From the NCBI GenBank assembly GCA_038496445.1, contig JALMLS010000029.1, positions 1 to 51,625 of the forward strand: DNA of 51,625 bases. Reading direction: 5' to 3'. This document shows, piece after piece, positions 1-47,543 of the stretch (position 1 is its first letter; each line of letters begins with the position of its first letter). The notes under the pieces are model-generated. The model saw only the letters and a program-made list of their open reading frames with translations, ran no database searches and was not told where the DNA came from. The position numbers were made by a program, and so were the translations under genes. Origin of the DNA: Trichosphaerium sp. ATCC 40318. Taxonomy: Eukaryota > Protista > Tubulinea.

Positions 1-21
1 ACAGAAATAACGTAAAGTCAT
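1..21 (-). CDS. 5' end (start of exon 1) of surface-protein family copy 0; the gene continues off the left edge
   Basis: ATG at 21 reads MTLRYFC. Bases 1-190 align with the 5' regions of copy 1 (3721-3925) and copy 8 (47523 onward). Confidence 0.75.
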
Positions 22-267
22 TTACTACAGCAGGAATAAGCATTATTTGGCGTAATAAAGCTGTTTTGAAAAAGGTAATCTTTTTTTTATAACGCACGTG
101 ATGCTTTCCAAAACTAAACCAAAATAAAAAAGGTGTGATACGTTCTCAGAAGTTTTGTTGGACCTCTCATTGTTTTTAACTGCCCAAAGAACCTCGATCA
201 CGATACTATCACGCTTTGTGTACAAAAAAGTGGAAACAAGAGCGTGGCAGGCTGAGGACATTAGACT

Positions 268-370
268 TCAAGCTAGAATTATGTTTATGGCAGAGATGAC
301 TCCTTGAGGTACTTTTGAGACCTCACCTCCGGAAGTTCAAACGGAGTTTCCACGAGATCGCTCTATCCAC
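268..370 (-). mobile_element. Degenerate non-LTR retrotransposon (LINE) RT fragment
   Basis: Aligns with 6507-6601 and 44710-44770; the minus strand reads ...SKVPQG..., resembling the RT GxPQG motif. Confidence 0.55.
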
Positions 371-1358
371 TTGATAAATACGCTTACGCCTAGAGCGTCT
401 TGTACTTGCCAAATAAAAGTAAATTTACAATTTACGAAAATCGTTAAGAAAGTTCTTCGCTTAAAAATTAACACAGCCTTGCGTAAGCAGTATGAACAAC
501 AGTTTATTGGTTTGTAAGTAGACACCATGTTAAAACACATTTAGGTGGCTTATTATTCGTTGCTTTTGGTAAAATACGTCATTAAAGTGCGTGTCAAGGA
601 GTTTAAGAATTGTTTAAAGCTTCGTCGTCCTTTTTGCCACATTACATTATATCGCTTGAATCTGTCAGCATGCGCGTACTAATACGCGTACAGCGTAGCA
701 TACATACTCTGGATAGAAGTTGCAACAAGTACAACTAAAATACTACATGTGATGTTCAATTATTGTCATCACCCGCAATGTACTACTCACGTGGCATCGA
801 CAGTGTTTAGTAAATGTCATTGTACTAAAAAGTAAAGTGTCCAACAGATGCCATGTAGACTATATTTGATTGCTGGTATGGCTAGGTACCATTAGCGTTG
901 TATCTAAAGTGGACAAAACACGTGGTCAAGTTTCTTTTTGTGGTTCGCTGGTGATTGGGATTTAACTCTACAAGGTATGCTCATGCTAATGTTAGCCTGA
1001 ACTTCATTTTCCGTGTTAACTTTTTCATTACATTAGAGTGCACGCGTCCATTCTACTTTAAAACTGACCCCACTTGTGTCACTCTTCCATGCTATGTGAT
1101 AAGTTTTGTTGTGGCAAAATTGACAAAAAAATTTGATACAGTTACACGCTTCTTTCATGGGTAGTGGACAAAATCTAATTTTCTGTTGTACAAAAGATAA
1201 AAAATGGGGTATCTGACCACAGAGCGAAAGAATACACCAAGTTTTGACATAGCTTTGACATTTGACAAAATTTTTTGACATTTTACATTGCGGAAAAAAG
1301 TCACTTTAATTTGAATGACAGAAGATCGATTGGGTCGATAAGTATTTTACTGTTAGGT

Positions 1359-3741
1359 TCAAACAGAAGATATTTCTACTTCCTTGGTTGTTAAAGTATA
1401 AGGGAAAATGGCTTGTCTCAACTTAGGTACAAAGAAAGCAATAATCAGACCTACAGCAATCTACCATACAAATTTAGTTTGCAAAATAATAAATGACAAC
1501 AAGAAAAAGAATGATGTGCACATACGAACACAAAAATCGGCTATGACACCTAATACCAAACCAACATTTACTGATGCTCCGCTATCACAACTATCAGCTC
1601 TTGATGTGATAACAATTATGCTAACAAAAGTTAGAGATCAGTGCAAAACTAAAAGCATACGATGAAAGAGTCCGCTCAATTCTCGCCAATACACATTCTG
1701 GTGAAAGAACTGTAAAAGTACCATTGATACAGTTACTGTTACTTCGTATTACTTCTCTTCTTGTCTCGCCAACACTTGTTGTGTCATTATCACTTGTGAA
1801 GTCAATGATGAACGTTGTATTCGATGGTATCACAATACATCCTAAACATCAGATTAACCAATAAACGTGTGCTAAATAACTTGTGATACAAGACATACCT
1901 TCAACTTGAAGAAAGCCTCCTGGAGCGATTGTTGCTATCTCTGAGTTTACAAAGTCACCATTTATTATCAAAGGACTAGACAACACTATTTCAGGTGGTA
2001 GACTACCAACTGTTGGTGCAGCTGTAGGTGATACAGTTGTCGGTTCAACTGTTGGTGCTGTTGTAGGCGATATTGTAGTGGTAATGAAAGTTTTGCCTTC
2101 GCAAGTAACTATTCAACATTGTAAGCGAGCAAATATAAATAATTTATACCATTAGCTTGACAATCTACAAAATATGTGGTGATATCAGAGTAGCCACATG
2201 TAAGATTTGTTGGTGTTGAAGGACAATCAAAAACGCTTCCAGTATCTATTTGATAAATTAGTACAATACAATTGCTTGTGCATTACTATTGTTGAGGCTG
2301 TTTTCGAATGTTGTTGTATTTCTAAATACGAAATTAAGTATGCTTGACGTGTAACAATAGAGTACCTTATCATAAAGTTCATATCAGAGCCTATCAATGC
2401 TGGGGATCTTGTAGTTATTGGATTATTTTGTACTTGTTTTCTACGTTGGATCAGTCATCAGTTATTGGCTATTAAATTAAGGAGAACGTTACACGCATAT
2501 AATATTCTCAAATACACAAGAATCTATCACTGCTGATCCACCGTTTGATAGACCACTCAAACCAATGAGCCAACTAATAGGCAATTAACATGATACTTGG
2601 CTAGGCGTGCGTACCAGTACATCTGTCATTGATTGGTTTTTCTTCTTCCACAGTATTATCAATGAAAGTTGAGTTTATTATCTGTACATCAGTTGAATTT
2701 GCGTATAGTACTGAAACATAGTATTCAAATTGTGCTATATATAAATGAGAATATATGAGGACTAAGATTCACATACCACCTCTTGCAAGTACATAATTGT
2801 CCTTGAACAAACAAGAATTGACTGTAACCTAAGTAATAAATGCGTGTGAATAAGTTTAGCTGCTATGCAAAGTCACAAAGTACTCTATCAACAGTTCTGA
2901 ATGTAGCAACAATGCCTATGCTTAAATAGTTACGATCAAACAAAATAACGGGAATCAAATATTACCTCTTCCTGTCATTCTGTGCAGAAGACTTCCTCCT
3001 TTATAATTATGTTGAAAATGACAATTATTCACAGAAACTGTTTCGACTGTTTCTATCCATAGTCCCAAAGCTTCGGCAAATCTTCCTCTGTCATCGTACA
3101 GTTCTTGGAAAAGTGAATTGCGAACAGCAGCATTTCGACTATTTTTCTCATTAATTGTGACAAAATCGAAATAAATCACGTGTACCTGTCAAATATTTGA
3201 ATAGAACTCTCTGTGCCGGTAACTACCATATTCCTACGCAATAGTCAATTGATCGATAAAACTAGACTTGTAATGAATGTACTCTACAGTGACATTTGCG
3301 AACTCGCTCAATCTGATTTTACAACCATCAAACGTAAATCCTGATAATGAGATACTTATGTTTTGAAACCCTATCACCGTTTGCCTTTGAAGTGCGCATG
3401 AAACATTTATGCCTTTATTTAACGCTAAATAATATGTTACAGAAACGTCCAAAAGCGTCAACATACCATAAATGTCTATACTTTCGTTGAGTTGTGCTTG
3501 AAACAAGCCGGCAGAAAAATTTAACCCAGTAGAATTGAGAATAAGCGTGGTTGGTCCTTCGTTCAAGTAGCACCCCATGTCAGTGCCACAATCGTGGTCA
3601 CTTGAAGTTACGACTAAGACATTTGGTAAATATTAATAAAACGTCATATTGCGCTGAATAGGTATTCGTACTTGTGTTACCGTGGGCAGGTGCGGCAAGA
3701 GCAAAAAAGAAAAAGAAAGTACAGAAATAACGCAAAATCAT
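1359..3741 (-). CDS. Multi-exon type-I membrane protein, beta-helix-like ectodomain with PT stalk (family copy 1)
   Basis: Signal peptide MILRYFCTFFFFALAAPAHG; exons such as VTSSDHDCGTDMGCYLNEGPTTLILNSTG, CLFKDNY, STFIDNT and CVFEN; PT stalk; TM helix; tail PKLRQAIFPYTLTTKEVEISSV* with stop at 1359-1361; short GT-AG introns. Confidence 0.85.
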
Positions 3742-3813
3742 TTACTATAGCAGGAATAAGCATTATTTGGCGTAATGAAGCGTTTTTTAAAAGGTAATCT
3801 TTTTTTTAAAAAC

Positions 3814-3821
3814 GCACGTGA
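3814..3821 (-). promoter_or_regulatory. E-box (TCACGTGC on the coding strand) upstream of the family gene; representative of nine such sites
   Basis: CACGTG cores at 95, 3815, 9468, 13121, 21607, 24469, 27871, 38328 and 47617, all with the same orientation relative to their gene. Confidence 0.6.
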
Positions 3822-4239
3822 TGCTTTCCAAAACTATTATCAAAATAAAAAGTGTGATATGTTCTCATTAGTTTTGGTTGGGCCTCTCATTGCTTTTAAC
3901 TGCCCAAAGAACTCTTTATCACGATATCTTGAGTTCACAAGTTATATCACGCTATGTAAACAAAGTGAAACAAGAACATGCCGAGGATAAACGAGAGAAG
4001 AAGAAGAAGGAGTTGATATTTACCCGGGAGACCCATGTTGGCTACCTAAAGAGTCATCTATAAGCAGGGTCGGTTCTCCTGCGATAGTGAAGGTTATGTT
4101 ATACCATTATCATTATGGCGTATGTAATCAGAGTGAATTTGGTGATTCCCAACGCACGTATTGAGTTGAGACGTGTAGTCCGTTTTCTTCACAAAGTGAA
4201 GCTAGTTTTTCAAATAGACTTTTGATTTGCTGTTGTCAT

Positions 4240-4600
4240 TTTCCTTTTTTTGACTATTTCCAAGGTTCCTCAAGACCGTATTTTAACACCTACAATCAAA
4301 AACTCAACTGATCATAATCCCACATCTCAAAATGTTCCTTTGAATATGTTTTAATTGTCTGACGCTGAAGTTTATTCTGAATTAGCTCAAAAGAATACTC
4401 CTGATGGTGTACTTATGTATTCTATGCGACGGTACTTGGGAATGTAGACAAATTTTAGAAAGCTACCAAGTTATTACCTGATGATGCATCAAATAAAATC
4501 CATATATTTGGTAAATGCTTTCACTGGGGCAGTCGTAGAGATTTAGCTTCACTTGTATCTATACGTAGTCGTTCCAAGGTCCTAAAAAATATTATGGCTT
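4240..4600 (-). mobile_element. Possible heavily decayed LINE ORF2 remnant
   Basis: Broken minus-strand peptides (SESIYQIYGFYL, VYIPK, ELIQNKLQR) resemble the YKYLG and downstream thumb motifs of non-LTR RTs; many stops and frameshifts. Confidence 0.3.
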
Positions 4601-5344
4601 TTTTGCTTGATCAAAAAGGTACCTCAAGACTCAATGATGTTTAATGACTTACCATGTTAACTTTTGGGAACGCAAACTCAGTAAGGCTTAACTTCAATCA
4701 ATTTATCGAGCAATACTCTGGCGTACATTCCATCCTTGACCAGTTTGCTGACGGCCTAGCATCTTTTTTTTACTTTTTTTTTTTTATCGCTTTTATATTT
4801 AATACTGTCCCTTCTTCCTTCTTTCTTCTAAGAACATGCTTAGTTTGGTAATGTATACAATATTTATAACAAAGATAACCAGTAGGAGAAATCCGAGTTA
4901 AGGAATGCCTCTGAATTGACTGACAACGTCTTGAGAAGCTTAGCACTTGATTTTCGTAACTTTTCAAGCCTTGATCTTGCAAACACAAATACTACTGAAG
5001 GCATGTGAAATAATTTATACTTTAATGAAGTGTAAATAACACAGTACATTACAGGGCGTAAAGTATCTTGCAGAGCCTTTAAAACGAGATTGATGTACAT
5101 TAACCTCAAAGGTTGCAAGAAACTTGGGATTCAATCCTTACTTGCTCTTGCATTCAATTGCCCTATTTTACCATTCCTAGGCTGTTTAGTCGTACGTCAT
5201 AGCAACTTACTCACAGATTGTCGCCTTTTTTAAATAACATATTTTATACAGACGTTACCACTGAGGACTTGGTACTTTGGTGAAGGAATTCGGTGGAGAA
5301 TTGGTTTTCGTTGATTTATATTAGCATGAGTGAGGCAAAACACC

Positions 5345-5670
5345 AGAAAAAGAAGTTATTGTTTAGTTGCACGTTTTGCGAACCAAACATTGTAGATAAG
5401 GTTCCTATGAGTGAAAATAGGTATCAAAAGCGTTTGTGAGCGTTTTAAGATGTGCATTATCTCTTTTTGAGTAATTACAATAGAATTTCAGTGAAGAGGA
5501 ACAATGCAACAACCCAAAAAAGAAGTTCTCGGTTACTAACATGTTTTTTGAACCAAAACTTTGCTGCAATGGTTTCCAAGTGTTCCAATAGCGTGCGCAA
5601 GCCTTTAATAGCGTTTTGAAATGTGCATTATCCATATTTGAGTAATTACAATAGAATTTTCAGTGAAGTG
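5345..5670. repeat. Imperfect tandem duplication with a unit of about 170 bp
   Basis: ATGTGCATTATC...TTTGAGTAATTACAATAGAATTT(T)CAGTGAAG occurs at about 5450-5497 and 5622-5669; a related sequence lies at 43860-43925. Confidence 0.7.
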
Positions 5671-6269
5671 CGCTCTGTATCCCACAATTTATTTCTGAGT
5701 AGTTTTTATGGGTATAAAATGAAACGAAAATAGTTTGAAAATTGTAGTAGTTGCAGTGTGTGCACCACGCGTGGGGCTTCCTAGCCATTTGGTCGAAAAT
5801 ATTTAAGGGAGTCCTCCGTCTAGCTTAGTGGGTGTATGCATTGCGAGGTGGAGTTGTTAAAGTTCCATCTTAATCCGACGTAGTGTGAAAGCTTGAATCG
5901 TTACATTAGCCAGCATGTCCTCGTAAGTAGCACGTAATTAACTTAGGAACTCGGTCTGGGCCAAGAAAATTATAAGGTCCGATACAGAGGTGAGTTCTGC
6001 CGTTAGGGAAAAGCTCTATATAAACTTTGACTAGGTGCTGCAAAGCATCCTACGATCGTTCTTTTGTTGCTAGGTTATATTATCTTTACTGCTTAATCTA
6101 AAACAATTTTTACGATCCATTAAGTGCAACTATTTTGTGATAATAACTGGAAATGTTTGGTAATTTCTTGATTTATTTTGTGCAAGTTCATTTTACAATT
6201 TCTAACTCAATGACACAACTCTTCTTCCTGTACATTTCTTAATTAGTTCGCGGTCTATTCTTGCGTTTA

Positions 6270-6635
6270 ATAAAACACCGAGTACAAAGACTATATCCTA
6301 TTGAACGCGACAGCAATATCGAGAATAAAAACAAAACTTATTTTCCTAAATTCTATGTCAAAACCTTGTTGTTTAGGGCGTAATTAAGAGCCCAGTATTC
6401 GACTCCCTAACAATTGTTCCCAGTTGAAGACAGAGTCATGCCTTAGAGAAATCTATGTAAATTGCAAAGATATCTTTGTTGTTTGCTTCAGCATTTTCAA
6501 TGATACGAAGCTAGAATTATGGCGGAACTGATTCCTTGAGGTAATTTTGAGACCTCACTTCCGGAGGGTCTAACGGAGTTTCCACGACATCGCTCTATCC
6601 ACAGCCGAGCTCTTCGCCACTTACCAAATTTTCGC
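6270..6635 (-). mobile_element. Degenerate LINE reverse-transcriptase fragment
   Basis: Homologous to 44240-44790; the minus strand encodes IFAIYIDFSKA* and KLPQG. Confidence 0.7.
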
Positions 6636-6866
6636 ATAAATTCCATTGTTAGTTTATTTGTTACAAGGGTTTGAAAAAACGGTTGGATGCGCAACAAATT
6701 ACCACGTGACAGTGTAAATGATATTTGCAAGTTCTGTAAGCTTGTCTGTATAGACAACACAAAAACCCATTAATTTACAAACACATTGATCTAGAATTGA
6801 CAAAAACTTGCAAAAAGTCACTTTAAGTTAACTTGAATGATTGATGATAAGTATTTACTGTTAGGT

Positions 6867-9286
6867 TCAAACAGAAGATATTCGTACTTCCTTGGTTGTT
6901 AAAGTATAAGGGAAAATGGCTTGTCTCAACTTAGGTACAAAGAAAGCAATAATCAGACCAACCGCAATCTACCATACAAATTTAGTTTGAGAAAAATAAA
7001 TGAAAACAAGGAAAAAGAAATGTCTTCACATACAAACACAAGAATGCCTAATGTGACACCTAACACCAAACCAACATTTACTGATGCTGATGCTCCATCA
7101 TCACAACTATCAGATCTTGATGTGATAACAATTACACTAACAAAAGTTAGATATCAGTGCAAAGATAAAAAGCATACGATGAAAGAGTCTGCTCAATTCT
7201 CGCCAATACACATTCTGGTGATACTAATGTAAAAGTACCATTGATACAGTTGCTGTTGCTTCGTATTACTTCTCTTCTTGTCTCGCCAACACTTGTGTTA
7301 TTATCACTTGTGAAGTCAATGATGAACGTTGTATTTGATGGTATCACAATACATCCTAAACATTGGATTAACCAATAAACGTGTTCTAAATACCTTGTGA
7401 TACAAGACATACCTTCAACTTGAAGAAAGCCTCCTGGAGCAATTGTTGCTATCTCTGAGTTTACAAAGTCACCATTTATTGTCAAAGGACTAGACAACAC
7501 TATTTCAGGTGGTAGACTACCAACTGTAGGTGATGCAGTTGTTGGTTCAACTGTTGGTGCAGTTGTAGGCGATATTGTGGTTGGTGGTATTGTTGGAGGA
7601 ATGAAAGTTTTGCCTTCGCAAGTAACTATTCAACACTGTAAGTGAGTAAATACATAATACTGTGTACCATTAGTTTGACAATCTACAAAATATGTGGTGA
7701 TATCAGAGTAGCCACATGTAAGATTTGTTGGTGTTGAAGGACAATCAAAAACGCTTCCAGTATCTATTTGATAAATTAGTACAATACAATTGCTTGTGCA
7801 TTACTATTGTTGAGGCTGTTTTCGAATGTTGTTGTATTTCTAAACATGACATTTAGTTTGCTTGCTGTGTTGGAAATAACATATTAGTTAGTGTACCTGA
7901 TTGTAATGTCCATGGAAGACCCGATCAATGCAGGGGATGTTATAGTTATTGAATTATTTTTTCTAGAAGTTGAATCAGGTATTTACTATTATATTTAGGC
8001 AGAACGTTACACGCATGTAATATTCTCAAATACACAAGAATCTATCACTGCTGATCCACCGTTTGATAGACCACGCAAGACCAATGAGCCAACTATAACC
8101 AGCAATTAATATGATACTTGGCTAGAACATGTGTACCAGTACATCTGTCCTCGATTCTTGGTATTTCTTCTTTCACAGTATTATCAATAAAAGTTGAGTT
8201 CAATATCTGTACATCAATTGAATTTGCGTATAGTACTGAAATATAGTAATCAGAGTTTGCTATATACAAATGAGAATATATGAGGACTACGATCTGCATA
8301 CCAGAACGGTTTGCAAGTACGTAATTGTCTTTGAACAAACAAGAGTTGATTGTAACCTAAATAAATGCATGTGTAAATATTTAGCCTGTAGTACAAAGTC
8401 ACAAATTACTCTATCAACAGCTCTGAATGTAGCAACAATTCCTATGTTTAAATAGTTACAATCAAACAAAATAAGGGAATCGAATATTACCTCTCCCTGT
8501 CATTCTATCGACAAAAAGCCCTCCCCTAAAATTATGTTGAAAATGACAATTATTCACAGAAACTGTTTCGACTGTTTCAATCCATAATCCCAAAGGATGG
8601 GCAAATCCTGTCTCATCGAACAGTTCATGGAAAAGTGAATTGCGAACAGCAACATTTTGGCTATATTTCTCATTAATTGTGACAAAATCGAAATAAATCA
8701 CGTGTACCTGTCAAATATTTGAATAGAACTCTCATTGCCTGTAACTACCATATTCCTACGCAATAGTCAATTGATCAATAAACTAGACTTGTAATGAATG
8801 TACTCTACAGTGACATTTGTGAACTCGCTCAATCGGATTTTACAATCATCAAACGTAAATCCTGATAACGAGATGCAAATGTTGTTATTCCCGTTCACCG
8901 CCTGCTCCTGTTCAAGTGTTTGAATTGCGCACGAAACAGTTATGCCTTTACTTAACGCTAAATAATTTGTTACAAAACCTTTCAACAGCGCCAACATACC
9001 ATAAATATCTATACTTTCGGAAAGTTGGGCTTGAAACATGCTGCTAGGAAAATTTAATCCAGTAGAATTGAGAATAAGCGTGGTTGGTCCTTCGTTCAAG
9101 TAGCACTCCATATCAGTGCCACAAACGTGGTCACTTGAAGTTACAACTAAGACATAAAAATTAACAAACCTTGTCGCGTCATATCGCAATCGCACTATCG
9201 CGATGAATAATATTCGTACTTGTGTTACCGTGGGTACGTGCGGCAAGAGTTAAAAACAAAAAGGCAGCACAGAAATACAAACTCAT
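6867..9286 (-). CDS. Surface-protein family copy 2
   Basis: Starts MSLYFCAAFLFLTLAARTHGNT; colinear with copy 1 exon by exon; ends KEVRISSV* with stop at 6867-6869. Confidence 0.85.
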
Positions 9287-9332
9287 TACCTACAGCAAGC
9301 ATAAGTATTATTGGCGCGTAAGAAGGGTTTTT

Positions 9333-9395
9333 TTAAGGCGTAGGTGCGGCAAGAACAAAAAAGAAAAAGAAAGTACAGAAATAACGTAAAGTCAT
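9333..9395 (-). other. Duplicated, truncated exon 1 forming a 20-codon upstream ORF ahead of copy 2
   Basis: ATG at 9395 reads MTLRYFCTFFFFVLAAPTP-like signal-peptide sequence ending in TAA at 9333-9335; nearly identical to exon 1 of copies 0 and 1. Confidence 0.7.
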
Positions 9396-10640
9396 TTACT
9401 ATACAAGGAATAAGCAGTATTGGGCGTAATGAAGCGTTTTTTAGAAGGTAAATTTCTTTTTGAAACGCACGTGATGCTTTCCAAAACTATTATCAAAATA
9501 AAATTAAAATGTGCAATATGTTTTTGTCACCTCTCATTTGCTTTTAACTGCCCATAGAGGCTTTATCACGACATTTAGCGGATAAATTATAACACTCTTT
9601 TGTGTACCAAAAGTAAATTTGAACGTGAACAATCCGCACGCCAAAAGAACGTCACTGGTTGAAAATTACAGATCACTCACATTAAAATGTGGGCCTTACC
9701 GGAAAGTATTATGGAAACTTGCCATGTTGAACTACTTGAAGAAACCCATTTTGGGTTTTCTAGATTTTCTTTTATTGTTAATGTACTGTTAGTCGTCGAT
9801 ATTATGGCAAAAAAGCTTGAAGAGTACAGATGCTGATATCACGATTGGTCACTGCAACCATAGCAAACTTATTACGTAAATGTTAGTTATTTTAATCTCA
9901 AAATATTCTGTTTTTTGTAACATTTTTTTTTCTAGATTTGTTTATCTTGGCGTCAGAATCACACATACAAAAGCTTGTTGCTGAGTTTGAGAAATACGAT
10001 ATCCTGTATCATATTTGGTATCATAAATATGTACGCTAACTATGTGTATTGTCGGTTTTTATCAGCTTGTGCTCCTTGAGCACTTGCTCATGATGCCTCA
10101 GTCTCGCCAACCGTATAACAAGCTCCGTTTATATGGGAACAGAAGTTACATACACTGTACAACAGTTTTAGGCTGAAAATGTAAATTGCTATCTAAAATC
10201 AAGCAACAATACTCTAGACGCCGCTGCTTACGCGTAGAGAGTGTGTAGGTATCTACAAACCGCTGTTTAAAACAAAACGGCAATAAAAAGGTAAAACTCC
10301 CTAAACTCCCTCAATTATATTCTACCACGCATATTTAAACCCTATTCTTTATGTTACAGCTATTTGGACCGCCCTAGCCTTTAATGGTTACAAGATAAAA
10401 TTCCACATATAGAAAACTCATGAACTGTAACAAAAAGTAGTCATGCACATAAACAAGCATGCTTGTACTTAAATAAACAAAACGATCATTGGGTTTTTTA
10501 ATCACGTGGGTTACGCTTTCGTAATTATGTTGCTGAAATTTTGAGGCTTGACCTCAGCCTTCTCTTGACAAGGCTAAACAAATAAATTGCACTGTGAGTA
10601 ACAAACTTATTCTCAGATATGACAGTATGTTGTTACAGTA

Positions 10641-13340: not shown

Positions 13341-13367
13341 AGTGTTCTAGTGAGACAAAGGCAAGCG

Positions 13368-21438: not shown

Positions 21439-21860
21439 TTCGTATAAAGGCCTACTTCGGTTTTGCTTTCTCTTGCTGACCTAAACGGTTGGAAACGTTT
21501 TACACCAATATGAGGCTATATAAGCGACTTCGACGTACACGTTATTAAGAAGAGTCTGTGAAGCGAAGGGCAAAGGAAGAGGAGATGGTTTTTCGTAACT
21601 CGAAAGCACGTGACTTTGGCGGAGAAATATTTCATCAATGTGTACATTATTAAACCACTGTTGACTTACAGCGCAAGTACGCCATGGTTCGCGGGTAAAC
21701 GCTTACAACGAGAATGCGTTTTTGTGAAGTTCGAAGTAGCAATTTTATTAGCAGGAGGACTTTGTTAGATAACTACAATTCTATCTTTATTTTGCTACCA
21801 AAGCATCTATAGTGTTGATTTGCAAAGTGGCTCAACCATGAGGAAAGTACGGAGTGACCA

Positions 21861-31089: not shown

Positions 31090-31165
31090 TAATGTGGCAC
31101 AATCTCATGTCTCAACTTTGGAACAAAGAAAATTACAAGGAGACCAATAGTCATATACCATCAAG
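31090..31165 (-). pseudogene. Isolated last-exon remnant of the surface-protein family
   Basis: The minus strand reads IGLLVIFFVPKLRHEIVPH, matching the TM/tail exon; no upstream exons. Confidence 0.65.
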
Positions 31166-35965: not shown

Positions 35966-38384
35966 TGGGAAGAAAAGTTCAACAATATTTCGTTACTTCC
36001 CGTTTTTACCGAACGCGTCAGTGGTTTAACGGCGGTTAGGCCAACAATAATAAGGCTAGAGTATGTAAAATACAGACTAGAAAAACTTTGAAAATCAGCT
36101 TTTCCCGTTTTTTGAAATAAATCAACAAAACTCTGCCCTGATCACATCCACATGTCCCAGCGCTTTGGAAAAGTCCTAGCAGGCTCCTCACGGACCAGTA
36201 GGATGGTAAGGAAACAGCGTGCCACGATGCAAGCAAAGAGCGGAAATAATGCTACAAACGTCTTAAAGACCACTGGTTCAGCGAATACATCTTTACCTGG
36301 CTTTTTCAAGCAATCTAAATCGCAAGGAGCGACCTTTGGAGCAAACTTCCAATCTTTTAGAGCTGGTATTGGAGCCATGCAAATGGCCACAAGGTGCGTG
36401 GCATTGAGCTCACTTCAAATACTCACCTTTCCCATCTTTAGACCAATAGTTTCATCGATTTTACTCCGCACATTGACAGTTAGTATGCTGGTTGGTTTCT
36501 GGCTCGCTGCACTTGGTATCTCATAACAGGCATTAAAGAAATTTAAAGCGGCGCTCTTTTTATGTTTGAATCTACGCGAAGCACGCTAAATCGCAACCGA
36601 AAGGCTTTTTGTTTCATTTCTGTCAAAAACCACTTCTTTTACCCTAAAACTGGCCTTTTAACGCCCAGTTGTCGTAGTGTTCGCAGCAGGTTACTTTAAC
36701 GCTCACGTAGCACCAGAACGCACTGTTTTTAAAAATTTTGGCTTTTTTTTAATCCTAAACGCTTTGCAAGTCCATTTTCTCACTTTCACAGCGCTTGTGT
36801 TGGTCTGCAGCGTCCACAACGAACAAATACTGGCGAAATCTTTTCAACACACTCAAAAAACGTTCTAATTCTTCTGACCTCATTCAACTCCATTTCTTCC
36901 ACTCTACAAAACTATGCCGCCGGTTTTTTTTCTTTCGTTCTCCGTTGTGCGTTACGCTTTGACCAATCGAACGTTTAGAGGTGCACTGACGGGCTCTACA
37001 AAAAGAGTATACCTATACTACTACCTGGACTGTCCAAAGCCGTCCAGTAAAAAAACTTCTGAAAAAAACAAAAAAAAATCAAAAAAAATCAAAAAACATT
37101 AAAAAAAATCACTCAAAAATACCTCTCAAAAAATAAAAGTTAACCTGCTGCGTGGTACACATATCGTACAACTATAATTTTAAATTTTTTATCCAAACAA
37201 ACTTCCTTTGTAACATCACGTAGTCGATGACAATTGATAGATCAAATTCGCTGACACATCGAAGACGAGGGGCTCTCTTTATTCTTATTTGATTGAACAA
37301 TACTGATTCTTTTGGATGATGGATATTTGACAAATAAGAAACACATTGGCGAATCAAAACAAAAAAAAACAGAAAAAAAAAAAAAAAAAAAACCAAAAAA
37401 AAGCAAACTGTGCCACGCACTCAGATGGAAATCAAAATTTATTGGAATATTGTGTACCTACAATGGAAAAAAAAAGGTTTGGTTCTCTCTATATCTCTTT
37501 TTTTTTATTATCCGTCTTTGATGGAAGATAAGAGAAATAAGGCACTGTTGTGTTTATTTTGAATTTGAAAAAATAATTTTGTTTTATTTTTTTTGGCCAC
37601 AGTGGAGTGTGGGAGAACCCCTTTTTCTTCTTTATTGTTTTGTATATTTTTTAAGTATTTAATAAAGACGACACATGTATTGATAAGCATAAGCTGCGTA
37701 TATTTGAATCATTTTCTTACAAAACTGAACATGTTTCTCAGCTAGCTGGCACCAGTACTATGTCAGTTTCAAAACTTCACTTCGTGTGCGAAGTCACGTG
37801 CAAGAGTAAGGCCTGAGACCTAAAATAAACCATTTAGTTTGTCATAAAATTACAGCGTTATAATAACATTGGTATTGTCGAGCAAATGTGGATAGTCTAC
37901 ATTTTGAAACTAGGCCATTGTTCGCGCATACCTAGCACGTGTTAGAGATCACACTTTTGACAAAATCATGTACTCACCTTTCAGCCTTTGCAGTCTATTG
38001 GTTATCTAGAGCTAGAAGAGATGAAGCATTGTTTTCTTAACTACTGCAAAACTTCATTTCGCTTTTAAAAGGATTTACGAAGGTATTTGAGTCTAATATT
38101 CATACCACGTAACGCACTACGCTAATATTGCTCGTTGTAATGTTTGCTATCGATATTGTCTTGCAAAAAAACCCGACAAGTTATGGCACATAGTTATTAT
38201 GTTGTACTCGTGTTGTAAACGCTTAACAGTGTTTTAGTGTACAAGGGAGTGTAGACCCACTCTTTGATTCTCATTTTAAACTATTGACCGCTTATTCATT
38301 TATTTTATAGCTTTTTCCTCCAACAATCACGTGCGTTCAATTAAGACCAGTAATTTGAATGCCTGTAACTGTTTGCTTTAGGAA

Positions 38385-40695
38385 ATGGATTTGTTTTATT
38401 TCTGCTCTGTGTTGTTGATTTTCGTGTTGGCTACGACGAGCGGTAACACAAGTACGAGTAGCTCTTCAATGATAATACGAGTAATTTTTACGATTTAGTC
38501 GTAACTTCAACTGAACACGTTTGTGGCAATAATCTTGATTGTTATCTGCAACAAGGACCTACAGAGCTTATTCTCAACTCGACAGACTTAGTTTTTAACA
38601 ATGCCGTATTTACTAGCGTTGATATTTACGGTAAGGAAATTACTTCTCACATCTTTAAGTGAGTTTTAGGTTTGTATGATGTAAATGTTTCATGTAGCAA
38701 TGGAAATTGGTATCCCACGAACTCTGACAATATCACTATCTCGTTATCAGGGTTCACAGTTAGAGATTGCTATTTCGGCATTAGTAATTTTGCGCATGTT
38801 TCAATTACGTACTTGAAGTTAGAGTCAACATACAAACAATGTTAACACTCGCCTTAGAAATATGACATTCGTTGGATACAATACAGGCCTAATATTTGGT
38901 AGCTGGTAACACTTTAACAGGATGGTAAGGATAGCTAACGACTAGTATAATAGTGCCAATGTGACTCTACAAAATGTGATGTTTAGAGATATTGTTACTT
39001 ATCGATATGATAAAATTCTGGAAATTACAAATTCACAAACAGCAACACATATTGAAAATTGTGTTTTTTCGCACAATACTCACAACGACACATCTGCAAC
39101 TTGTACATCCAAGGAACAACTATTATCTATTTTTTAGTAACATCATATAGTTTTTCAAGTAATTAATATTATTGCAGCTCCAAGGGTACTTGAGCGTTGT
39201 GTTTCAAGTCTCATTTTTTGAGTAGGTTGTAATCACCTCTTGTTTGATGGAGGATAATGATGTATTTAATGGTGGACTTTTGTACTTAAGTACAACTGAA
39301 GCAGAAATAACAAACTCTACTTTTATTAGAAACAAAGTTACCATACCATCTGATAGTGGATGCAAAGGTACTATTTGAATGTCAGGTCATGAGTAATAAT
39401 TACTCTTTCGAATAGATTCTCTCCGTATTTTTGGTAAACAGTTGCTTGTGGACTCTTGTGTGTTTGAGAATAATACTTGCCTGTAAGTATTCTCTATTCT
39501 TGGTTTTTTATTAACAATACTCGGTAGAACAAATACTTCAGCAGTTCTAAGTTATCCCTCATTTTCTAGTCGTAATTCCAATATTACAATAAGGTGATTA
39601 ACACTAAAGAATTTATTTATTTATACAGGGCTTACCTCGTTATAGAAATACAAGATTTTCTGCCGCAGGTGATGATGGTACCATAAGAATAGATACTTGT
39701 AAATAGTTTTAATCCACAACTAGCAATCGCAGGCACTGTGTTTTCTTGTGATGATGTACCAACTAATTTCACGTGTGGACTTGGTAAGTGCTATATTAGT
39801 ACATCCTTCGATGACTGCAACACAAACGGTACCACCAAAAGCTAATTTGGCAGTATTTAATTTTATCAAATAGTTACATGTGAGAACGACAAGTACTGTG
39901 GTACGATATTTGTACAAGGCTTCAATTTTCTTTTGTATTTTCTCCTAATGTACAACCTACAGTTTTACCAACTGTGTCTCCAACTACAAACACACCTACG
40001 ACTATACCTACTACAAGCGTAGCTCTGCCAAATCAAACTGTGTTATCTAGTCCTTTTACAATAGGTGGAGACTTCATTCACTCAGGAACGGCTACAATTG
40101 TACCAGGAGGCTTTCTTCTGGTTGAAGGTAACATTTGATTGTTCATGATCCTTGATTTGTCTTATTAAGTGTAGGATCGATTGTGATACCACCAAATACA
40201 ACATTCATCATTGATTACACTCTTTATAATAAAATAACAATCGGTGACACACGTGAAGAAGTGATGAGAAGTAACAATGGCACAATAACCGGTGATGTTA
40301 CTCTCGTTCCGCCACAGGCAAAACAATGTGTAACAGCAAGGCTTGATCGGACTTTTTCATCGTATGTCTCTCTTTTGAGTGAAATGATCTAACTATCCTT
40401 GATTTTAGGATATTTGTAATTGCTTCGAAACCTGACTCTTGTGGCAACAGAACAGAATCAGTGAATGTTGGATTGGTGTTAGGTATTACTTTTGGTGTTC
40501 TCGCATTGGTATGTCACTATTTTTGAATCGCTGTAGTTCAACTAGTCTATCTCAACTCTGACTTTGAACACTAATTACGATGGTAGATGATTATTGGTCT
40601 CCTTGTGATTTTCTTTGTACGAAAGTTGAGGCATGCAGTTGTACCATACTCATTACGAAGAACAATAGCACGAGATTAATCCTATTGAAGAGTAA
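38385..40695 (+). CDS. Surface-protein family copy 7 (inverted; closest to copy 6)
   Basis: Starts MDLFYFCSVLLIFVLATTSGNT; includes VTSTEHVCGNNLDCYLQQGPTELILNST and IVIPPNTTFIIDYTLYN; ends INPIEE* with stop at 40693-40695. Confidence 0.85.
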
Positions 40696-41196
40696 TTGTA
40701 TTTACTATCATTAAACACCATATCATATTGCCTTTTTCTTCATTGATTTGAAATAGATCTGCCACATTTGACGTTATTAGGACCAATCCATGATATTGGC
40801 ATTTTTTCTATGTGTTGGTAAAACTAGCAATATGCTTATTGGTGAGCGCAGCACGTGCACACATGGGACAACATGGCGTTATTTCTACTGTTGTGTGCTA
40901 TGGAGAGGCGAGCCAGTTAACAGTTTTTGCTTTTGTAGTCTAAAATTAGTAGCTCCTCTGTACATTCTTATACATTCAGAGAATACATTTGTGTATTTCG
41001 TCAAAGTTCAAATTAATATTTCGTGTAAATACTTGGAAAGAATGTGCCCTTTTACACTGCAGTGTGTTATTTATACTGTGAACACCGTTGACTAGCTACT
41101 TTTTCGACATCATAAAGTAACGCGCCTTGAGTAAGCTGTGCTTAATCAAAATAAACCAAACAATCAAACAACACCACATAATAACATAATAAAGCC

Positions 41197-41847
41197 ATGG
41201 AAAACGAATACATACCTAACGAGATCATCGAAGGCGTATTATTCCTTGGAAGCAGGCATTGTACGCTTTATTTAGATCAAAAGCGTAATTAAGCATCTCA
41301 CGGCATTTTAGCACGCGCAGACAAGGCACAGCTTGAATCTTTGAACATTGGGTTTGTTTTAGACATAAGTGCGCTTCCAGGTCTCGCAAAACACCCTCCA
41401 ATAGAATACCTTGAGTTATCTATACTAGACAGGTACTTATACACGATAAAAACAATATGGTGACTAAAAAACACAAAAGAAAAGAAACTCCAATAATAGA
41501 AACTTATACTTCCGTTTTGGATAAAATTGCTAAAGTTAGAGCAGAAAAAAAAGCCACACTAGTTCATTGCAACCATGGCGTATCACGTGCGTTATTATTA
41601 AAGTCTTTTATTTTGTTATAGCTAATCGTTAATAGGATCCTCGGCTTTTGTAATGTTCTACCTTATTGCCATAGAAAGGATGACATTGTATCATGCTTTC
41701 AAGCATGTTAAAGAAAGGCGTAGAGTTGCACTTCCAAATGTTGGCTTTCTAAAACAACTCATTGAAGTTGAGACTAAAGAGTTAGGATCATCAACACTCA
41801 CTATTGGTAAGTATGGTCAAATTTTGTGGAACAAGCCAAAAGAGTAA
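41197..41847 (+). CDS. Atypical dual-specificity protein phosphatase
   Basis: MENEYIPNEIIEGVLFLGS...; catalytic VHCNHGVSRS split by an intron; AFKHVKERRRVALPNVGFLKQL. Confidence 0.92.
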
Positions 41848-42202
41848 AGTCAATACTGTGAGATGGACGTGCGCCTTTTGACAGTTTTTTTTCTACTTGC
41901 TACAGTATTGTACAATAACCGCAACCATCTAATTGTAATGTACTTCGAATATACGATAATATTTTGCCTACCAAGTTTGGAAAATGTCTTTGACGCACTT
42001 TTGTCTTTTGTCTTTGGACAATTAGCAGAAACGCGCTTTTATTTCAATGGAGGCTTTGGCCAGAGCAAGATCATCAATGTAGGCTGTTTCGAAGTGATCC
42101 TTAAAAGTATTGACAGACAATATATATTGCTTGTTTCAAAGGAGTTAAAAATAGGCATTTAGGTCAAACAGCGTCAAACAACACAATTGCTTGACCCACA
42201 CT

Positions 42203-43111
42203 ATGTCTGAAGCAGGCGGACATCTTCTATCAACTCAATGCTTACCGGCAGAGATACTGACCGATATTCTACTTTATTTGAACAGAAAACAGCGTATATC
42301 ATCTTCTATAGTCTCTCGGCGTTTTAACGACATAATACGCGGTAATATCGGCTTTGGATGTATAAAATTGAAGCGAGCGCAAGTAGCATCGGATTGTCGC
42401 GTTCTCAAAGGCAGTCCGTTGCTTAAAAATACTGAAATCAACTGCGCTGGTTATATTGTAACTGATAGCGACTTGGCTTGCCTTTGTGGCGTACATACAA
42501 TAAATCTAGACGCTATGCGAAACACAGATAAAGTGATGGTGTCATTGCTTCAAGACGGTAACCACTCTATTCATAAGATAATGCTTAGTGGCGCAGATAT
42601 ATCAGATGTTACATTAAAGTCACTACGAAGCGTTCATACGATTCGTTTATGTTGTTGTAAGAAAATAACTGATGTCGGCTTGAAAGAGCTAAAAGATGTA
42701 CACACAATAGACATTGAGGGCTGTGATCGCATCACAGTTAGAGGTATAGCAGCACTCAAAGGTGTACATAATATTACCCTGATGAGAGCAAAAGATTCAT
42801 GGCTTAAACACCTTGCAAATGTCCATACAGTTCACATAAGCGGAGATATAACAAATGAAAGAATCTCCGACTTGAAAAATGTCAAGAAGCTTATACTTTG
42901 TAAGTGCGACAAAATTACAGATGAAGGTATGAAGAAACTAGTTAACCTTGAAGAATTACATGTATCACATTATATGCGTATTACGGATGAATGTTTGAAG
43001 CATATGAAGTCACTCAAGGTTGTTGAGATTGGTGAGTATTGTAAGATAACATGTGAAGGCATTGAGTCTTTGGGTATTACATGTATAGAACGTCCAGTTG
43101 AATGGAGGTAG
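42203..43111 (+). CDS. F-box / leucine-rich-repeat protein, intronless paralog of 30036-30926
   Basis: CLPAEILTDILLYLNRK F-box; shares LKGSPLLKNT and KDSWLKHL with the first copy; ATG at 42203. Confidence 0.92.
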   Translation: MSEAGGHLLSTQCLPAEILTDILLYLNRKQRISSSIVSRRFNDIIRGNIGFGCIKLKRAQVASDCRVLKGSPLLKNTEINCAGYIVTDSDLACLCGVHTINLDAMRNTDKVMVSLLQDGNHSIHKIMLSGADISDVTLKSLRSVHTIRLCCCKKITDVGLKELKDVHTIDIEGCDRITVRGIAALKGVHNITLMRAKDSWLKHLANVHTVHISGDITNERISDLKNVKKLILCKCDKITDEGMKKLVNLEELHVSHYMRITDECLKHMKSLKVVEIGEYCKITCEGIESLGITCIERPVEWR

Positions 43112-44239
43112 ACATTATCACGTGACAGAACACAACATAGCTAGTTTGTTTTAGTTGATGTAACGAATAAATATGTTAAAAGTAGTTGAGCCTCGCATGC
43201 TTTAGTTGTAACAAGAATACCAAAAGATTTTACTAAAATGTATTGCCAGGCAATACTGGGGTTGACGTCAAATAATCTTTCTGCCTTACAGCATATAAAA
43301 ATATGAGTCACCTACCTCACAATCACATGACACTTTCAATGTTTTTTCACATATTGGATTGTGCACTACTCTTAGCGAATCGGTGGTGTTTGGAGCCCTT
43401 TTTGTGTACCAGGTTTACCCAAAATGGCTTTTTAACCCATTGTGTTGAATTGTGCTACTATTGCATCAGCAATATACCAAACACCTTTGAGAGAAGGGCA
43501 GACCTGATAGAACAAAGTAAGACATGTTACTAAGTCCTATAAAAATAGATGTAAAGTTGCCGATATTTCAGAAGATCAAGTGAGTAATTAGATTGGACTG
43601 AATGATCCAAACAGTTTTATGAGTACCGCTAGCCATAGCAGTAAATGCGAAAGTCAATATAGAGTTCATTTAGATATCCTCTCATACAGCCTACCTCAGC
43701 TTTAGAAAGCTCAAACCGAGCTAAACATCTGCAAACTGTACATCATAAATGTACAGGACTCTACCTTATAAACAAACGAGGACGCAGGAAACAAAAGGAG
43801 AGAGTTTCGTTTTCCTAATGTACCAACAACTCCACAAGCCAAAACAGAATTAATCGTTTGGTAGCACGTTTTGCAAACCAAAACATTGCTGAAACTGTTC
43901 TCACGCAGAATGTGCATTATCCAAACGAGTGTATTTTTAACATAGGTTTAGAAGATTACAGATTTTTGTTGCTGAGTATCTTAGCCGTCGGTTAACCGGC
44001 TACAGGTTTCGTGGCCTGCGTAGCTGGGACCCTTACCTGACCACCTCTAATTGTGTCACACTCATTACGAAGAACCACAATTAAAAAGATTACTTGTTAA
44101 AAAGAAACTGTAACTTAATGTTGTAAGCCCAGATTCAATACAGGTTCTCATATTCGTAGCGATATCTCTCGCTATAATATTGGCTTAACAAAATGCTTTA
44201 GTATCTCAAACGAGTACACTTCTGAAAAACTTCCACAAC

Positions 44240-44790
44240 AAAACACCGAGTACCAAGACTATATCCTATTGAACGCGACAGCAATATCGAGAATAAAAAC
44301 AATATTAGGATGGCATTAAACTTGAAAAAGCACTTATCGATTTGAGTATTGGAGCAACGAAACTTATGCTTCCTAAATTCTGTGTCAAAACCTTGTTGTT
44401 TTAGGGCGTGATTAAGAACCCAGTATTCGACTGAGTCTTATGTCTTGGAGAAATCTATGTAAATTGCGAAGATATATTTGTTGTTTGCTTCGGCCTTTTC
44501 AATGACATGGCGGTATGTTCTTTGGCCATGGTTATGTTACGTTCTTGGTAGAAACTGTATTGTATGTTGGTCATTATTTTATGTTTTTTAATTATCTCAG
44601 TCAGACGTTTGTTTATCATTTGAGTTTCTATCTTGTACATAGAGTTGAGGAGAGCTGTAGGTCTATAGTAAAAGGTTAAGTTTTTTGCCTTTTTTTGTTG
44701 GAGGAAAATGAGGTACTTTTGAGACCTCATTGGAGGTTCAAACGGAGTTTCCACAAGGTGGCTCTATCCACAGCCGAGCTCTTCGCCACT
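44240..44790 (-). mobile_element. LINE reverse-transcriptase pseudogene fragment
   Basis: YRPTALLNSMYKI...INKRL...QYSF, then after a frameshift IFAIYIDFSKT*DSVEYWVL; these are conserved non-LTR RT motifs. Confidence 0.85.
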
Positions 44791-45123
44791 TACCAAACTT
44801 TCTCGTAAATTCCATTGGTAGTTTATTTGTTACGTGGGTTTGAAAAAACGGTTGTGTTCGCAAAAAATTACCACATGCCAGTGCTTCACATTTAAAATGT
44901 GATATTTTCGAGTTCTGTCAGCAGTGTCAGATCCGTCAAATCCCTCAGATTGTCTAAATAGACAATACAAACACTCACATTACTTTGCAATCTCTACAGT
45001 ATCAATCTAAACACGTTGATCTAGAATTGACAAAAACTCACAAAAACTTGCAAAAAGTTACTTAGCTTAACTTGAATGCATGGACAATAATCGATTGGGA
45101 CGATGAGTATTTTACTGTTAGTT

Positions 45124-47543
45124 TCAAACAGAAGATATTTCTACTTCCTTGGTTGTTAAAGTATAAGGGAAAATGGCTCGTCTCAACTTAGGTACAAAGA
45201 AAGCAATAATCAGACCTACAGCAATCTACCATACAAATTTAGTTTGAGAAAAATAAACGAAAACAAGAAAAAGAAATGTCTTCACATACGAACACAAGAA
45301 TGCCAAATGTGACACCTAATACCAAACCAACATTTACTGATGCTCTGCTATCACAACTATCAGCTCTTGATGTGATCACAATTATGCTAGCAAAAGTTAG
45401 AGATCAGTGCAAAAATAAAAAGCATACGATGAAAGAGTCCGCTCAATTCTTGCCAATACACATTCTGGTGAAAGAACTGTAAAAGTACCATTGATACAGT
45501 TGCTGTTGCTTCGTATTACTTCTCTTCTTGTCTCACCAACACCTGTTGTGTTATTATCATTTGTGAAGTCAATGATGAACGTTGTATTTGATGGTATCAC
45601 AATACATCCTTAACATCGGATTAACCAATAAACGTGTGCTAAATAACTTGTGACACAAGACATACCTTCAACTTGAAGAAAGCCTCCTGGAGTGATTGTT
45701 GCTATCTCTGAGTTTACAAAGTCACCAACTATTATCAAAGGGCTAGACAACACTATTTCAGGTGGCAGACTACCAACTGTTGGTGCGGCTGTAGGTGATA
45801 CAGTTGTCGGTTCGAATGTTGGTGCAGTTGTAGGCGATATTGTGGTTGGTGATATTGTTGGAGGAATGAAAGTTTTGCCTTCGCAAGTAACTATTCAACA
45901 CTGTAAGAGAGCAAATACAAATAATTTATACCATTAGCTTGACAATCTGCAAAATGTGTGGTGATATCAGAGTAGCTGCAGCCACATGTAAGATTTGTTG
46001 GTGTTGAAGGACAATCAAAAACGCTTCCAGTATCTATTTGATAAATTAGTACAATACAATTGCTTGTCCATTACTATTGTTGAGGCTGTTTTCAAACGTT
46101 GTTGTATTTCTAAACACGACATTTAGTATTCTTACTGTGTTGGAAATAACATATTAGTTAGTGTACCTGATTGTAATGTCCATGGAAGACCCGATCAATG
46201 CTGGGGATATTGTAGTTGTTAAAGTATTTTGTACTTGTTTTCTAGAAGTCGGAATCAGTTATTTCAGTTGACTATTAAATTTAGGCAGAACGTTACACGC
46301 ATGTAATATTCTCAAATACACAAGAATCTATCACCGCTGATCCACTGCTTGTTAGACCACTCAATACCAATGATCCAACTATTACAGGTGATTAATATGG
46401 CGCTTGGATAGAACACGTGTACCAGTACATCTGTCATTGATTGGTCTTTCTTCTTCCACAGTATTATCAATAAAAGTTGAGTTCAATATCTGTACATCAA
46501 TTGAATTTGCGTATAGTACTGAGACATAGTAATCAGAGTTTGCTATATACAAATGAGAATATATGAGGACTGATATCTGCATACCAGAACCACTTGCAAG
46601 TACGTAATTGTCCTTGAACACGCAAGAGTTGATTGTAACCTAAATAAATGCATGTGTAAATATTTAGCCTATTATACAAAGTCACAAATTACTCTATCAA
46701 CAGCTCTGAATGTAGCAACAATTCCTATGTTTAAATAGTTATGATCAAACAAAATAAGGGAATCAAATATTACCTCTCCCTGTCATTCTATTGAGAAGAA
46801 CTCCTCCTTTAAAATTATGTTGAAAATGACAATTACTCACAGAAACTGTTTCGACTGTTTCTATCCATAATCCCAAAGGCTCGGCAAATCTTCCTCTCTC
46901 ATCGAACAGTTCATGGAAAAGTGAATTGCGAACAGCAACATTTTGACTATTTCTCATTAATTGTGGCAAAATCGAAATAAATCACGTGTACCTGTCAAAT
47001 ATTTGAATATAACTCTCTGTGCCTGTAACTACCATATTCCTACACAATAGTCAATTGATCAATAAACTAGACTTGTAATGTGAATGTACTCTACAGTGAC
47101 ATTTGCAAAGTCATTCAATCTGATTTTACAACCATCAAACGTAAATCCTGATAATGAGATGCAAATGTTATTATTCCCGTTCACCGTCTTCTGTTGGATT
47201 GAGCACGAAACATTTATGCCTTTATTTAACGCTAAATAATTTGTTACAGAACCTTTCAAAAGCGTCAACATACCATAAATGTCTAAACTTTCGGAAAGTA
47301 TAACTTGAAACGTGCCAGGAAAATTTAATCCAGTAGAATTGAGAATAAGCGTGGTTGGTCCTTCGTTCAAGTAGCACCCCATATCAGTGCCACAAACGTG
47401 GTCACTTGAAGTTACGACTAAGATGTTTGGCAAATTAATAAAACGTCATATCGCGCTGAATAGGTATTCGTACTTGTGTTACCGTGGGTAGGTGTGGCAA
47501 GAGCAAAAAACAAAAAGGCAGTACAGAAATAACGCAAAGTCAT
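45124..47543 (-). CDS. Surface-protein family copy 8
   Basis: Starts MTLRYFCTAFLFFALATPTHGNT; colinear with copies 1 and 2; ends KEVEISSV* with stop at 45124-45126. Confidence 0.85.

Follow-up and report, generated by a model that had tools for sequence, protein, structure and literature searches.

A tandem array of spliced genes for putative beta-helix surface glycoproteins in the amoeba Trichosphaerium sp. ATCC 40318

Gene content, products and expression of the array

Self-BLAST and a four-way DNA alignment revealed that contig C273 of Trichosphaerium sp. ATCC 40318, analysed here over its entire length of 51,625 nucleotides (nt; the window), contains repeated gene-length units with tiny GT-AG introns. 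The contig, from a eukaryotic assembly of 70 Mb in 642 contigs, has a GC content of ~36% and few long open reading frames (ORFs), and its gene models were built from these two comparisons and a custom protein-guided spliced aligner. Eight gene-length copies (c1 to c8), a ninth copy represented by its 5′ end and three scraps belong to one intron-rich family, in line with the nine paralogs and at least three scraps noticed in an earlier reading of the letters alone (the sequence-only reading). Seven of the gene-length copies are on the minus strand and c7 alone is on the plus strand. We propose below that they encode surface glycoproteins with a beta-helix ectodomain, probably used in adhesion or recognition. 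The features of the family in the window are as follows.

1-205, minus strand: promoter region and first codons of the ninth copy, cut by the contig start; 89% identical to 3721-3926
1359-3741, minus strand: c1, 16 exons, frameshift patches needed at two points, about 2560 in exon 9 and about 1537 in exon 15
6867-9286, minus strand: c2, intact, 16 exons, 556 amino acids
10641-13036, minus strand: c3, intact, 16 exons, 557 amino acids
14181-15029, minus strand: C-terminal part of c4 (stalk, juxtamembrane module, transmembrane helix and tail PKLRHVIVPY), 87% DNA identity to its counterpart in c5
15366-20123, minus strand: mobile-element-like insert that splits c4
20124-21438, minus strand: N-terminal part of c4, with signal peptide, homologous N-cap and rungs with paired GGAL and FxxN
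about 21773-24319, minus strand: c5, 16 exons, apparently intact, with a long tail
25043-25236 and 25296-25397, in opposite orientations: two scraps with subfamily-A exons 14 and 13, 82-97% to c2 by tblastn
about 25516-27810, minus strand: c6, 15 exons, open to the stop after ...RRIKPTEVTSTEE
31092-31154, minus strand: scrap of a transmembrane/tail exon, 81% to c6 by tblastn
about 38391-40700, plus strand: c7, inverted with respect to c6, 72% DNA identity
45124-47543, minus strand: c8, intact, 16 exons, 560 amino acids, five introns supported by RNA contigs from run X1

Copies c1, c2, c3 and c8 have 16 colinear exons in common and c5 follows the same series. Copy c6 differs from the series by the missing intron 2, which leaves it with 15 exons, and the copy whose ectodomain differs is c4. 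The colinear exon series that the sequence-only reading had extended to every copy but c4 holds for c1, c2, c3, c5 and c8, and not strictly for c6. The frame reads intact in c2, c3, c6 and c8 and probably also in c5, whose exon 1 (MYLYFYSSLLILSFASITHGNT) was assigned manually to 24253-24319. Three copies look broken: frameshift patches are required in c1 and c7, and c4 is interrupted by an insertion, in addition to one in-frame stop at 20934 in the model of its N-terminal part. A 1-nt gap in c1 is visible in the DNA alignment, and this copy is a probable pseudogene or assembly error; its counterpart on contig C210 (L024) is 99.6% identical and intact. The status of c7 is uncertain, because its two or three patches are placed differently with different guide proteins. 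As for the ninth copy, positions 3721-3926, to which it was matched, are the region upstream of the start codon of c1, start codon included, and where the start of the window cuts this copy, an intact one follows on the colinear haplotig C210.

The architecture of the products was read directly from the spliced models and from P0001, a protein of 551 amino acids known from two transcript records, a JGI contig and a sequence of the marine transcriptome set MMETSP (in keeping with a marine protist), with signal peptides and transmembrane helices called without a dedicated predictor. It agrees from end to end with the order first proposed: signal peptide, ectodomain with Cys and CxFxxN repeats, Pro/Thr stalk, juxtamembrane module, one transmembrane helix and a PKLRxxIxPY tail. 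The signal peptide is a hydrophobic N-terminus ending in ...THGNT, and is followed by a conserved, Cys-stabilised N-cap (TSSxHxCGxxxxCYLxExPTxLxLNSTxL), in which 13 copies agree at 15 columns, by strands of the repeated form xVxIxxCxFxxN, of which CxFxxN occurs in every copy, and by a Cys-rich C-cap (VFDCP...C...DCQTNVTC). The stalk varies in length and is probably O-glycosylated. The juxtamembrane module, of ~100 amino acids, reads GDFV...PGGFLxVEG-CIVIPxNTTFII...RxExIRSNSNCINGTxTLVSPECVLARIExTLSS, and leads to a hydrophobic stretch of ~27 residues before PKLR and to a tail of ~22 residues, PKLRxxIxPY(T/S)L, which ends in ...ISSV in most subfamily-A copies. All these parts are found in c2, which ends in ...PKLRQAIFPYTLTTKEVRISSV and has 19 Cys and 15 NxS/T sequons. 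With an N-terminal signal peptide, a C-terminal transmembrane helix and sequons, the products have the layout of type I single-pass membrane glycoproteins. The residues invariant across the family comprise 11 Cys together with Gly, Ile, Ser, Phe and Asn, and are of a structural rather than a catalytic kind. In a motif scan of the window, PK[LIM]RxxIxPY occurred five times, always on the minus strand, and the peptides quoted earlier (YDDRGRFAEALG, MEDFSRFGEPLG, FDERGRFAEPLG and NYKGG/NFRGG/NFKGG) were found in their places. The C-termini of c1, c2, c8 and most subfamily-A copies, ...(V/L)x(I/V)SS(V/L)-COOH, resemble a class I PDZ-binding ending; those of c3, c5, c6 and P0001 differ from this form.

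The family is transcribed and spliced. RNA contigs from a single run (X1), aligned to window positions 42000-47900, skip 45387-45427, 46034-46074 and 46110-46166, with ends CT..AC that are GT..AG on the minus strand, and their loose ends fit introns 47418-47473 and 45609-45665; since DNA would keep those introns, the source of the contigs is RNA transcribed from c8 or from copies close to it. Additionally, the mRNA contig of P0001 (L001) confirmed the 16-exon structure: it aligned to G000:C81:27900-30800 in 16 blocks with 99.5-100% identity, separated by gaps of 44-70 nt that are GT..AG at the 13 resolved junctions. Because positions 1-12194 of C81 equal positions 39450-51625 of the window, P0001 is the product of an array member about 22 kb beyond c8, and is a legitimate full-length representative of the family.

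Fold of the ectodomain and relation to described families

Exon fragments could mostly not be placed by MAFFT on the repetitive P0001, and the alignment used for structure prediction (A4) was thus limited to residues 20-205 of P0001 plus 26 correctly placed exon-frame rows. From it, AlphaFold2 (AF2) produced a model with a mean predicted local distance difference test (pLDDT) of 83.1 and a predicted template modelling score (pTM) of 0.80, with short strands in a regular rhythm of three per rung, stacked as in a right-handed parallel beta-helix. When this model was compared by VIA-align with 48,161 chains, the best 50 were all right-handed parallel beta-helices (Z 13.8-8.8; root-mean-square deviation about 3 Å over 133-177 residues), including alginate lyase 6kfn (Z 13.8), the polysaccharide lyase family 6 (PL6) enzyme 7dmk (Z 12.3), tailspikes (Z 12-13), pectate lyases and NosD, as well as the adhesins PfbA (Z 10.9) and SRRP (Z 9.9). 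Foldseek agreed weakly with a beta-helix, and an Atlas search gave a TM-score of 0.73 to NosD/Beta_helix clusters. The model thus supports the beta-helix that had been suspected from the motifs for the first 186 residues of the ectodomain; since CxFxxN strands recur, the helix may continue to about residue 300. By motif count P0001 would have at least seven CxFxxN-type rungs, about five of them within the model.

Sequence profiles gave weaker signals. The best match of the window exon frames to Pfam Beta_helix (PF13229) reached 18.3 bits (E 0.0019) against a cut-off of 25.9, and 8 of 20 exon-5 peptides matched this profile weakly at E<=1 (best E 8e-4). Searches of PDB sequences returned nothing significant; the best row for an exon-5 profile was a PL6 alginate lyase (E 0.023), and the top rows were beta-helix proteins. 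For the juxtamembrane module, a profile search against PDB found no match, and a language-model feature search with residues 376-485 pointed weakly to pieces of the pertactin/autochaperone type (Pertactin, rOmpB_passenger and AC_1 clusters at 0.80-0.85), which we take as leads only. A genome-wide scan with PF13229 left C273 without a match and yielded 48 exon-level matches above or near the cut-off elsewhere, among them C188:68132-83503, where several adjoin family copies L009 and L010; judging from these profile matches, beta-helix proteins are abundant generally in the host genome.

Among 1.84 billion representative proteins, the stalk and juxtamembrane frame of c2 retrieved a single match, P0001, from this same species; P0001 as query retrieved only itself, and a metagenome scan based on an alignment of exon 2 was likewise without a relative. 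Nothing significant came from sequence searches of Pfam and PDB with the family, and a paper search found no description of it in Trichosphaerium. These results support the earlier impression of an undescribed family, apparently restricted to this lineage and seen so far only in this organism.

Resemblance to Chlamydia's polymorphic membrane proteins (Pmps) had been suggested from FxxN and GGA(I/L) motifs. CxFxxN is indeed present in all copies, whereas GGA[IL] occurs three times in the coding strand of the window, always in c4, so that pairing of FxxN with GGA(I/L/V) rung after rung is not seen in the other copies. None of the exon frames scanned, two from c4 among them, matched the Chlam_PMP profile (PF02415) at E<=1, and genome-wide it had one match, on contig C78, and none on C273. 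We consequently reject membership among the chlamydial Pmps; the link is a likeness of fold and of one motif. Nor do the proteins carry an autotransporter beta-barrel translocator, their C-terminus being a single hydrophobic helix with a short tail, and no autotransporter Pfam profile matched P0001.

Duplication, homogenisation and selection

Contig C273 represents a haplotig or an overlap piece: at the left, positions 1-12433 are colinear with G000:C210:74246-95000 at 96-98.7% identity, apart from a 10-kb indel, and positions 39450-51625 match C81:1-12194 at 99.3% identity. The colinear blocks pair C210:74246-78860 with window positions 1-4643 and C210:89179-95000 with 6600-12433; between them, C210 has 10.3 kb with two extra copies, L023 (intact) and L021 (inverted and frameshifted), and the window has 2 kb. 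The array continues beyond the window onto C81. What the window shows is a single haplotype of a section of this long tandem array, with at least about 18 copies over C210, C273 and C81 and at least 40 family loci genome-wide. Exon matches in the whole assembly, 102 for the juxtamembrane frame and 49 for the N-terminal piece, are lower bounds that include haplotig duplicates, as do all copy counts in the assembly because of the nature of C273.

Copy c4 seems chimeric, with a Pmp-like ectodomain joined to a local C-terminal cassette, because its ectodomain comes from another subfamily and its C-terminal part is 87% identical to that of c5. Relatives of this GGAL/FxxN ectodomain, which appears to define a separate Pmp-like subfamily, lie in tandem on C54:122077-130454 (three) and on C34:230635-230838, and behind one of those on C54 lies a distant juxtamembrane match (34% identity). 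The ~4.8-kb insert in c4 has two long ORFs without a match in a Pfam scan; a 248-residue ORF has a 97% copy within a 695-residue open frame on C368 and a 62% copy on C259, and an internal duplicate of 44 residues at 15601-15732, features that fit a split-direct-repeat retroelement. On C14, the juxtamembrane-transmembrane-tail cassette (L017 and L018; spliced-alignment scores about 330, last four exons only) stands behind ectodomains that do not align with the family, and a cluster on C9 has many cassette matches at 30-46% identity. The cassette thus seems to be common to several ectodomain types.

Sequence variation among the copies was not uniform along the gene. With introns included, c3 is 48-83% identical to c2 and c8 in the 5′ half and 75-95% in the 3′ half: exons 1-8 are 48-83% and introns 2-7 48-67% identical, and there is a sharp break at intron 8, beyond which identity is 70-94% in exons and 76-95% in introns, with 91-95% for introns 12 and 13. 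Nei-Gojobori synonymous divergence (dS) in the c3 pairs is 0.65-0.71 in the N-half and 0.21-0.25 in the stalk and juxtamembrane module, and trees of the two halves disagree. The high identity of introns 12 and 13, together with a dS about three-fold lower, points to homogenisation of the 3′ part. The membrane-proximal part, first described as nearly invariant, is conserved and under purifying selection, with a ratio of non-synonymous to synonymous rates (dN/dS) of 0.13-0.38 in pairwise comparisons of the stalk and juxtamembrane module and 0.30 by tree-based counting; on top of this selection, its constancy is in part a product of gene conversion or recombination.

Pairwise dN/dS in the ectodomain's N-half is 0.5-1.0, and tree-based counting over 15 non-redundant subfamily-A copies gave 0.73 (0.61 in modelled strands and 0.75 outside them), a rough, parsimony-based figure that includes four frameshifted copies and ignores recombination within halves. 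The N-terminal variation noted at the outset is concentrated in discrete patches, the first ectodomain exon being well conserved: in sliding windows, framework at 0.2-0.5 alternates with patches at 1.0-1.6, so that the ratio is not uniformly well below 1, and non-synonymous change is highest 10-13 residues beyond each CxFxxN, which corresponds to matching positions on one rung after another. In the tests for excess non-synonymous change, made with the same rough counting, the best patch had p=0.08, and no site passed an uncorrected p<0.05. The allele-like pairs c1/L024 (four synonymous and three non-synonymous differences) and c2/L022 (five and two) show no hypervariability. Diversifying selection, as inferred in the sequence-only reading, is therefore neither shown nor excluded. 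The birth and death of copies is supported by those that are broken, by the scraps and the mobile-element insertion, and by the 10-kb segment with two copies that is present in one haplotig and absent from the other. We envisage that the family would evolve by tandem duplication, deletion, decay and mobile-element insertions, while gene conversion or recombination would preserve the likeness of the 3′ module among copies.

Other genes lie within the array. Two intron-less paralogs with F-box and leucine-rich repeats (LRR) occur at 30036-30923 and 42155-43108, both on the plus strand (Pfam F-box, E 2e-5 and 2e-7; LRR_6/LRR_4). A multi-exon gene of the Stealth family at 32478-35992 (minus strand; CR1, CR2 and CR3 all matched, E 5e-10 to 8e-22), for a GlcNAc-1-phosphotransferase-like enzyme, is located between copies of the glycoprotein family, and an exon at 41626-41844 (plus strand) matches the dual-specificity phosphatase catalytic domain (PF00782, E 2e-8).

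Candidate functions and comparison with known systems

Our preferred explanation, held with somewhat better than even confidence, is that the array encodes lineage-specific type I surface glycoproteins with a beta-helix rod on a stalk that serve as an adhesion or recognition set. A binding role is likelier than catalysis, because the invariant residues are structural and the exposed loops vary. The stalk would hold a rigid rod off the membrane, and the rod would present on one face the stack of loops that follow each buried CxFxxN strand; loop differences between copies would then give the amoeba a heritable collection of related binding surfaces with which to adhere to, or recognise, particles, prey, algal walls or other cells, and the constant module and tail could couple all versions to the same anchoring, sorting or uptake machinery.

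Several points weigh against this explanation. Confident modelling covers residues 20-205 of one member, P0001, and a single-sequence AF2 run over residues 20-345 reached a pLDDT of 34; the top structural matches are enzymes (alginate and pectate lyases, tailspikes), which keeps an enzymatic role among the rival readings. Three of the eight copies appear broken, and the RNA evidence covers c8-like copies and the member on C81. Finally, per-site and window tests did not demonstrate positive selection on the loops, whose differences may for that reason be neutral drift under loose constraint.

A more specific version, which we consider unlikely, is that of a germline-encoded recognition repertoire, polymorphic in copy number, with a beta-helix rod as scaffold instead of LRR or immunoglobulin domains and with exon-scale recombination among paralogs onto a constant signalling or uptake cassette. 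The stack of loops after CxFxxN would provide the binding diversity by which prey, algal walls and other cells are told apart, and c4 would exemplify the shuffling, with a C54-type Pmp-like ectodomain on a c5-type C-terminal module.

Of the rival readings, the least improbable is that the proteins are building blocks of a cell coat (glycocalyx or test), rods on glycosylated stalks forming a protective layer in which variation has little functional meaning. The rigid rod, the mucin-like stalk, the many sequons (15 in c2) and the high copy number would suit such a coat, and a non-significant loop dN/dS near 1 would reflect loose constraint. However, the conserved cytoplasmic motif and a juxtamembrane module with dN/dS 0.30 suggest intracellular coupling and not a passive coat, and three diverged subfamilies have been kept with intact reading frames.

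We give a slightly lower chance still to a membrane-anchored polysaccharide lyase or hydrolase built on the beta-helix, attacking algal or bacterial wall polymers at the surface. Alginate lyases head the structural matches, followed by pectate lyases and phage tailspike depolymerases, and the exon-5 profile also has a PL6 alginate lyase as its best PDB sequence match. Trichosphaerium has been described as a digester of seaweed; our paper search found no account of its seaweed feeding. Nevertheless, structural matches of this strength are generic to the fold, no carbohydrate-active enzyme family gave a significant sequence match, and the residues invariant throughout the family are Cys, Gly, Asn, Phe and Ile, with no conserved acidic or basic cluster evident in the ectodomain. 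The active sites of beta-helix enzymes lie in exposed loops, which here are the least conserved parts; with invariant residues that look structural and no Pfam or PDB sequence match, the family does not group by sequence with polysaccharide lyases or glycoside hydrolases.

A role as self/non-self receptors, in allorecognition or in mating and fusion by analogy with Dictyostelium TgrB1/TgrC1, is improbable: a tandem array of variable single-pass surface proteins that differs in copy number between haplotigs recalls such systems, but the allelic pairs are near-identical and not enriched in amino-acid changes, unlike known allorecognition loci, and no partner-pair structure was seen. Least probable of all is that the array is a segmental repeat, largely in decay and amplified selfishly, with members that serve no function at present. 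Three apparently broken copies out of eight, the scraps and the mobile-element insertion would fit this, but an open frame over 16 exons and about 555 codons is retained by at least four copies of the window and by many others in the genome. Moreover, dN/dS stands at 0.30 for the juxtamembrane module and lies well below 1 for framework strands, and there are spliced transcripts.

Free-living amoebae must recognise food, surfaces and one another, and to our knowledge almost nothing is known of their surface receptors outside Dictyostelium. With an adhesion or recognition set as the preferred reading, the array would represent a parallel beta-helix rod like those of bacterial adhesins, built into the layout of a eukaryotic single-pass receptor and amplified to dozens of copies, and a tractable case in which to ask whether beta-helices can act as variable recognition scaffolds in eukaryotes. 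Our account is descriptive, resting on the fold and the dynamics of the family, and illustrates how gene conversion and unequal exchange shape an array. Its new elements are the transcript-validated model of 16 exons, the fold of the N-terminal half, the homogenisation of the 3′ module, the copy-number difference between haplotypes and the chimeric, element-disrupted c4.

As in the DGF-1 family of Trypanosoma cruzi (bioRxiv 10.64898/2026.07.27.741050), a large protist surface multigene family combines a repeated extracellular region with a conserved membrane-associated module; compared by description, DGF-1 proteins are of very large size and contain seven 'rib' modules and several transmembrane helices, and no relation in sequence is expected. 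The right-handed parallel beta-helix also serves as a surface binding module in PfbA (3zpp, 4mr0) and in the binding region of Limosilactobacillus reuteri SRRP (5nxk), which match the amoeba model over about 155-172 residues with 13-16% identity; these are Gram-positive, cell-wall anchored bacterial proteins that do not form an arrayed variable family. With the chlamydial Pmps (PMC10715098, PMC11166332) the family shares polymorphic paralogs, a buried FxxN-type motif, variable loops stacked on one face and, on the preferred reading, a role in adhesion; in Pmp rungs the FxxN and GGA motifs are buried and the loops are presented on one face (PMC10715098). Pmps are, however, bacterial autotransporters with a C-terminal beta-barrel and paired GGA, whereas the amoeba proteins are eukaryotic, encoded by intron-rich genes, anchored as type I proteins by signal peptide and transmembrane helix, and without the GGA partner except in c4.

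The closest described analogue is the Pmp-like family of trichomonads (TVAG_140850, TVAG_212570; PMC6701047). Its members have canonical paired FxxN and GGA(I/L/V) and are recognised Pmp homologues, unlike the amoeba family with its lack of PF02415 matches; their tails carry NPx[YF] in place of PKLRxxIxPY, and, of the two families as compared here, only that of the amoeba has the Pro/Thr stalk and the juxtamembrane module of ~100 amino acids, which has no detectable relatives. Both are expanded protist families with N-terminal repeats of beta-helix type, a short conserved motif before a single C-terminal transmembrane helix and, in a brief cytoplasmic tail, further conserved motifs; the trichomonad proteins are proposed adhesins, single-pass proteins whose expression raises adhesion (PMC6701047).

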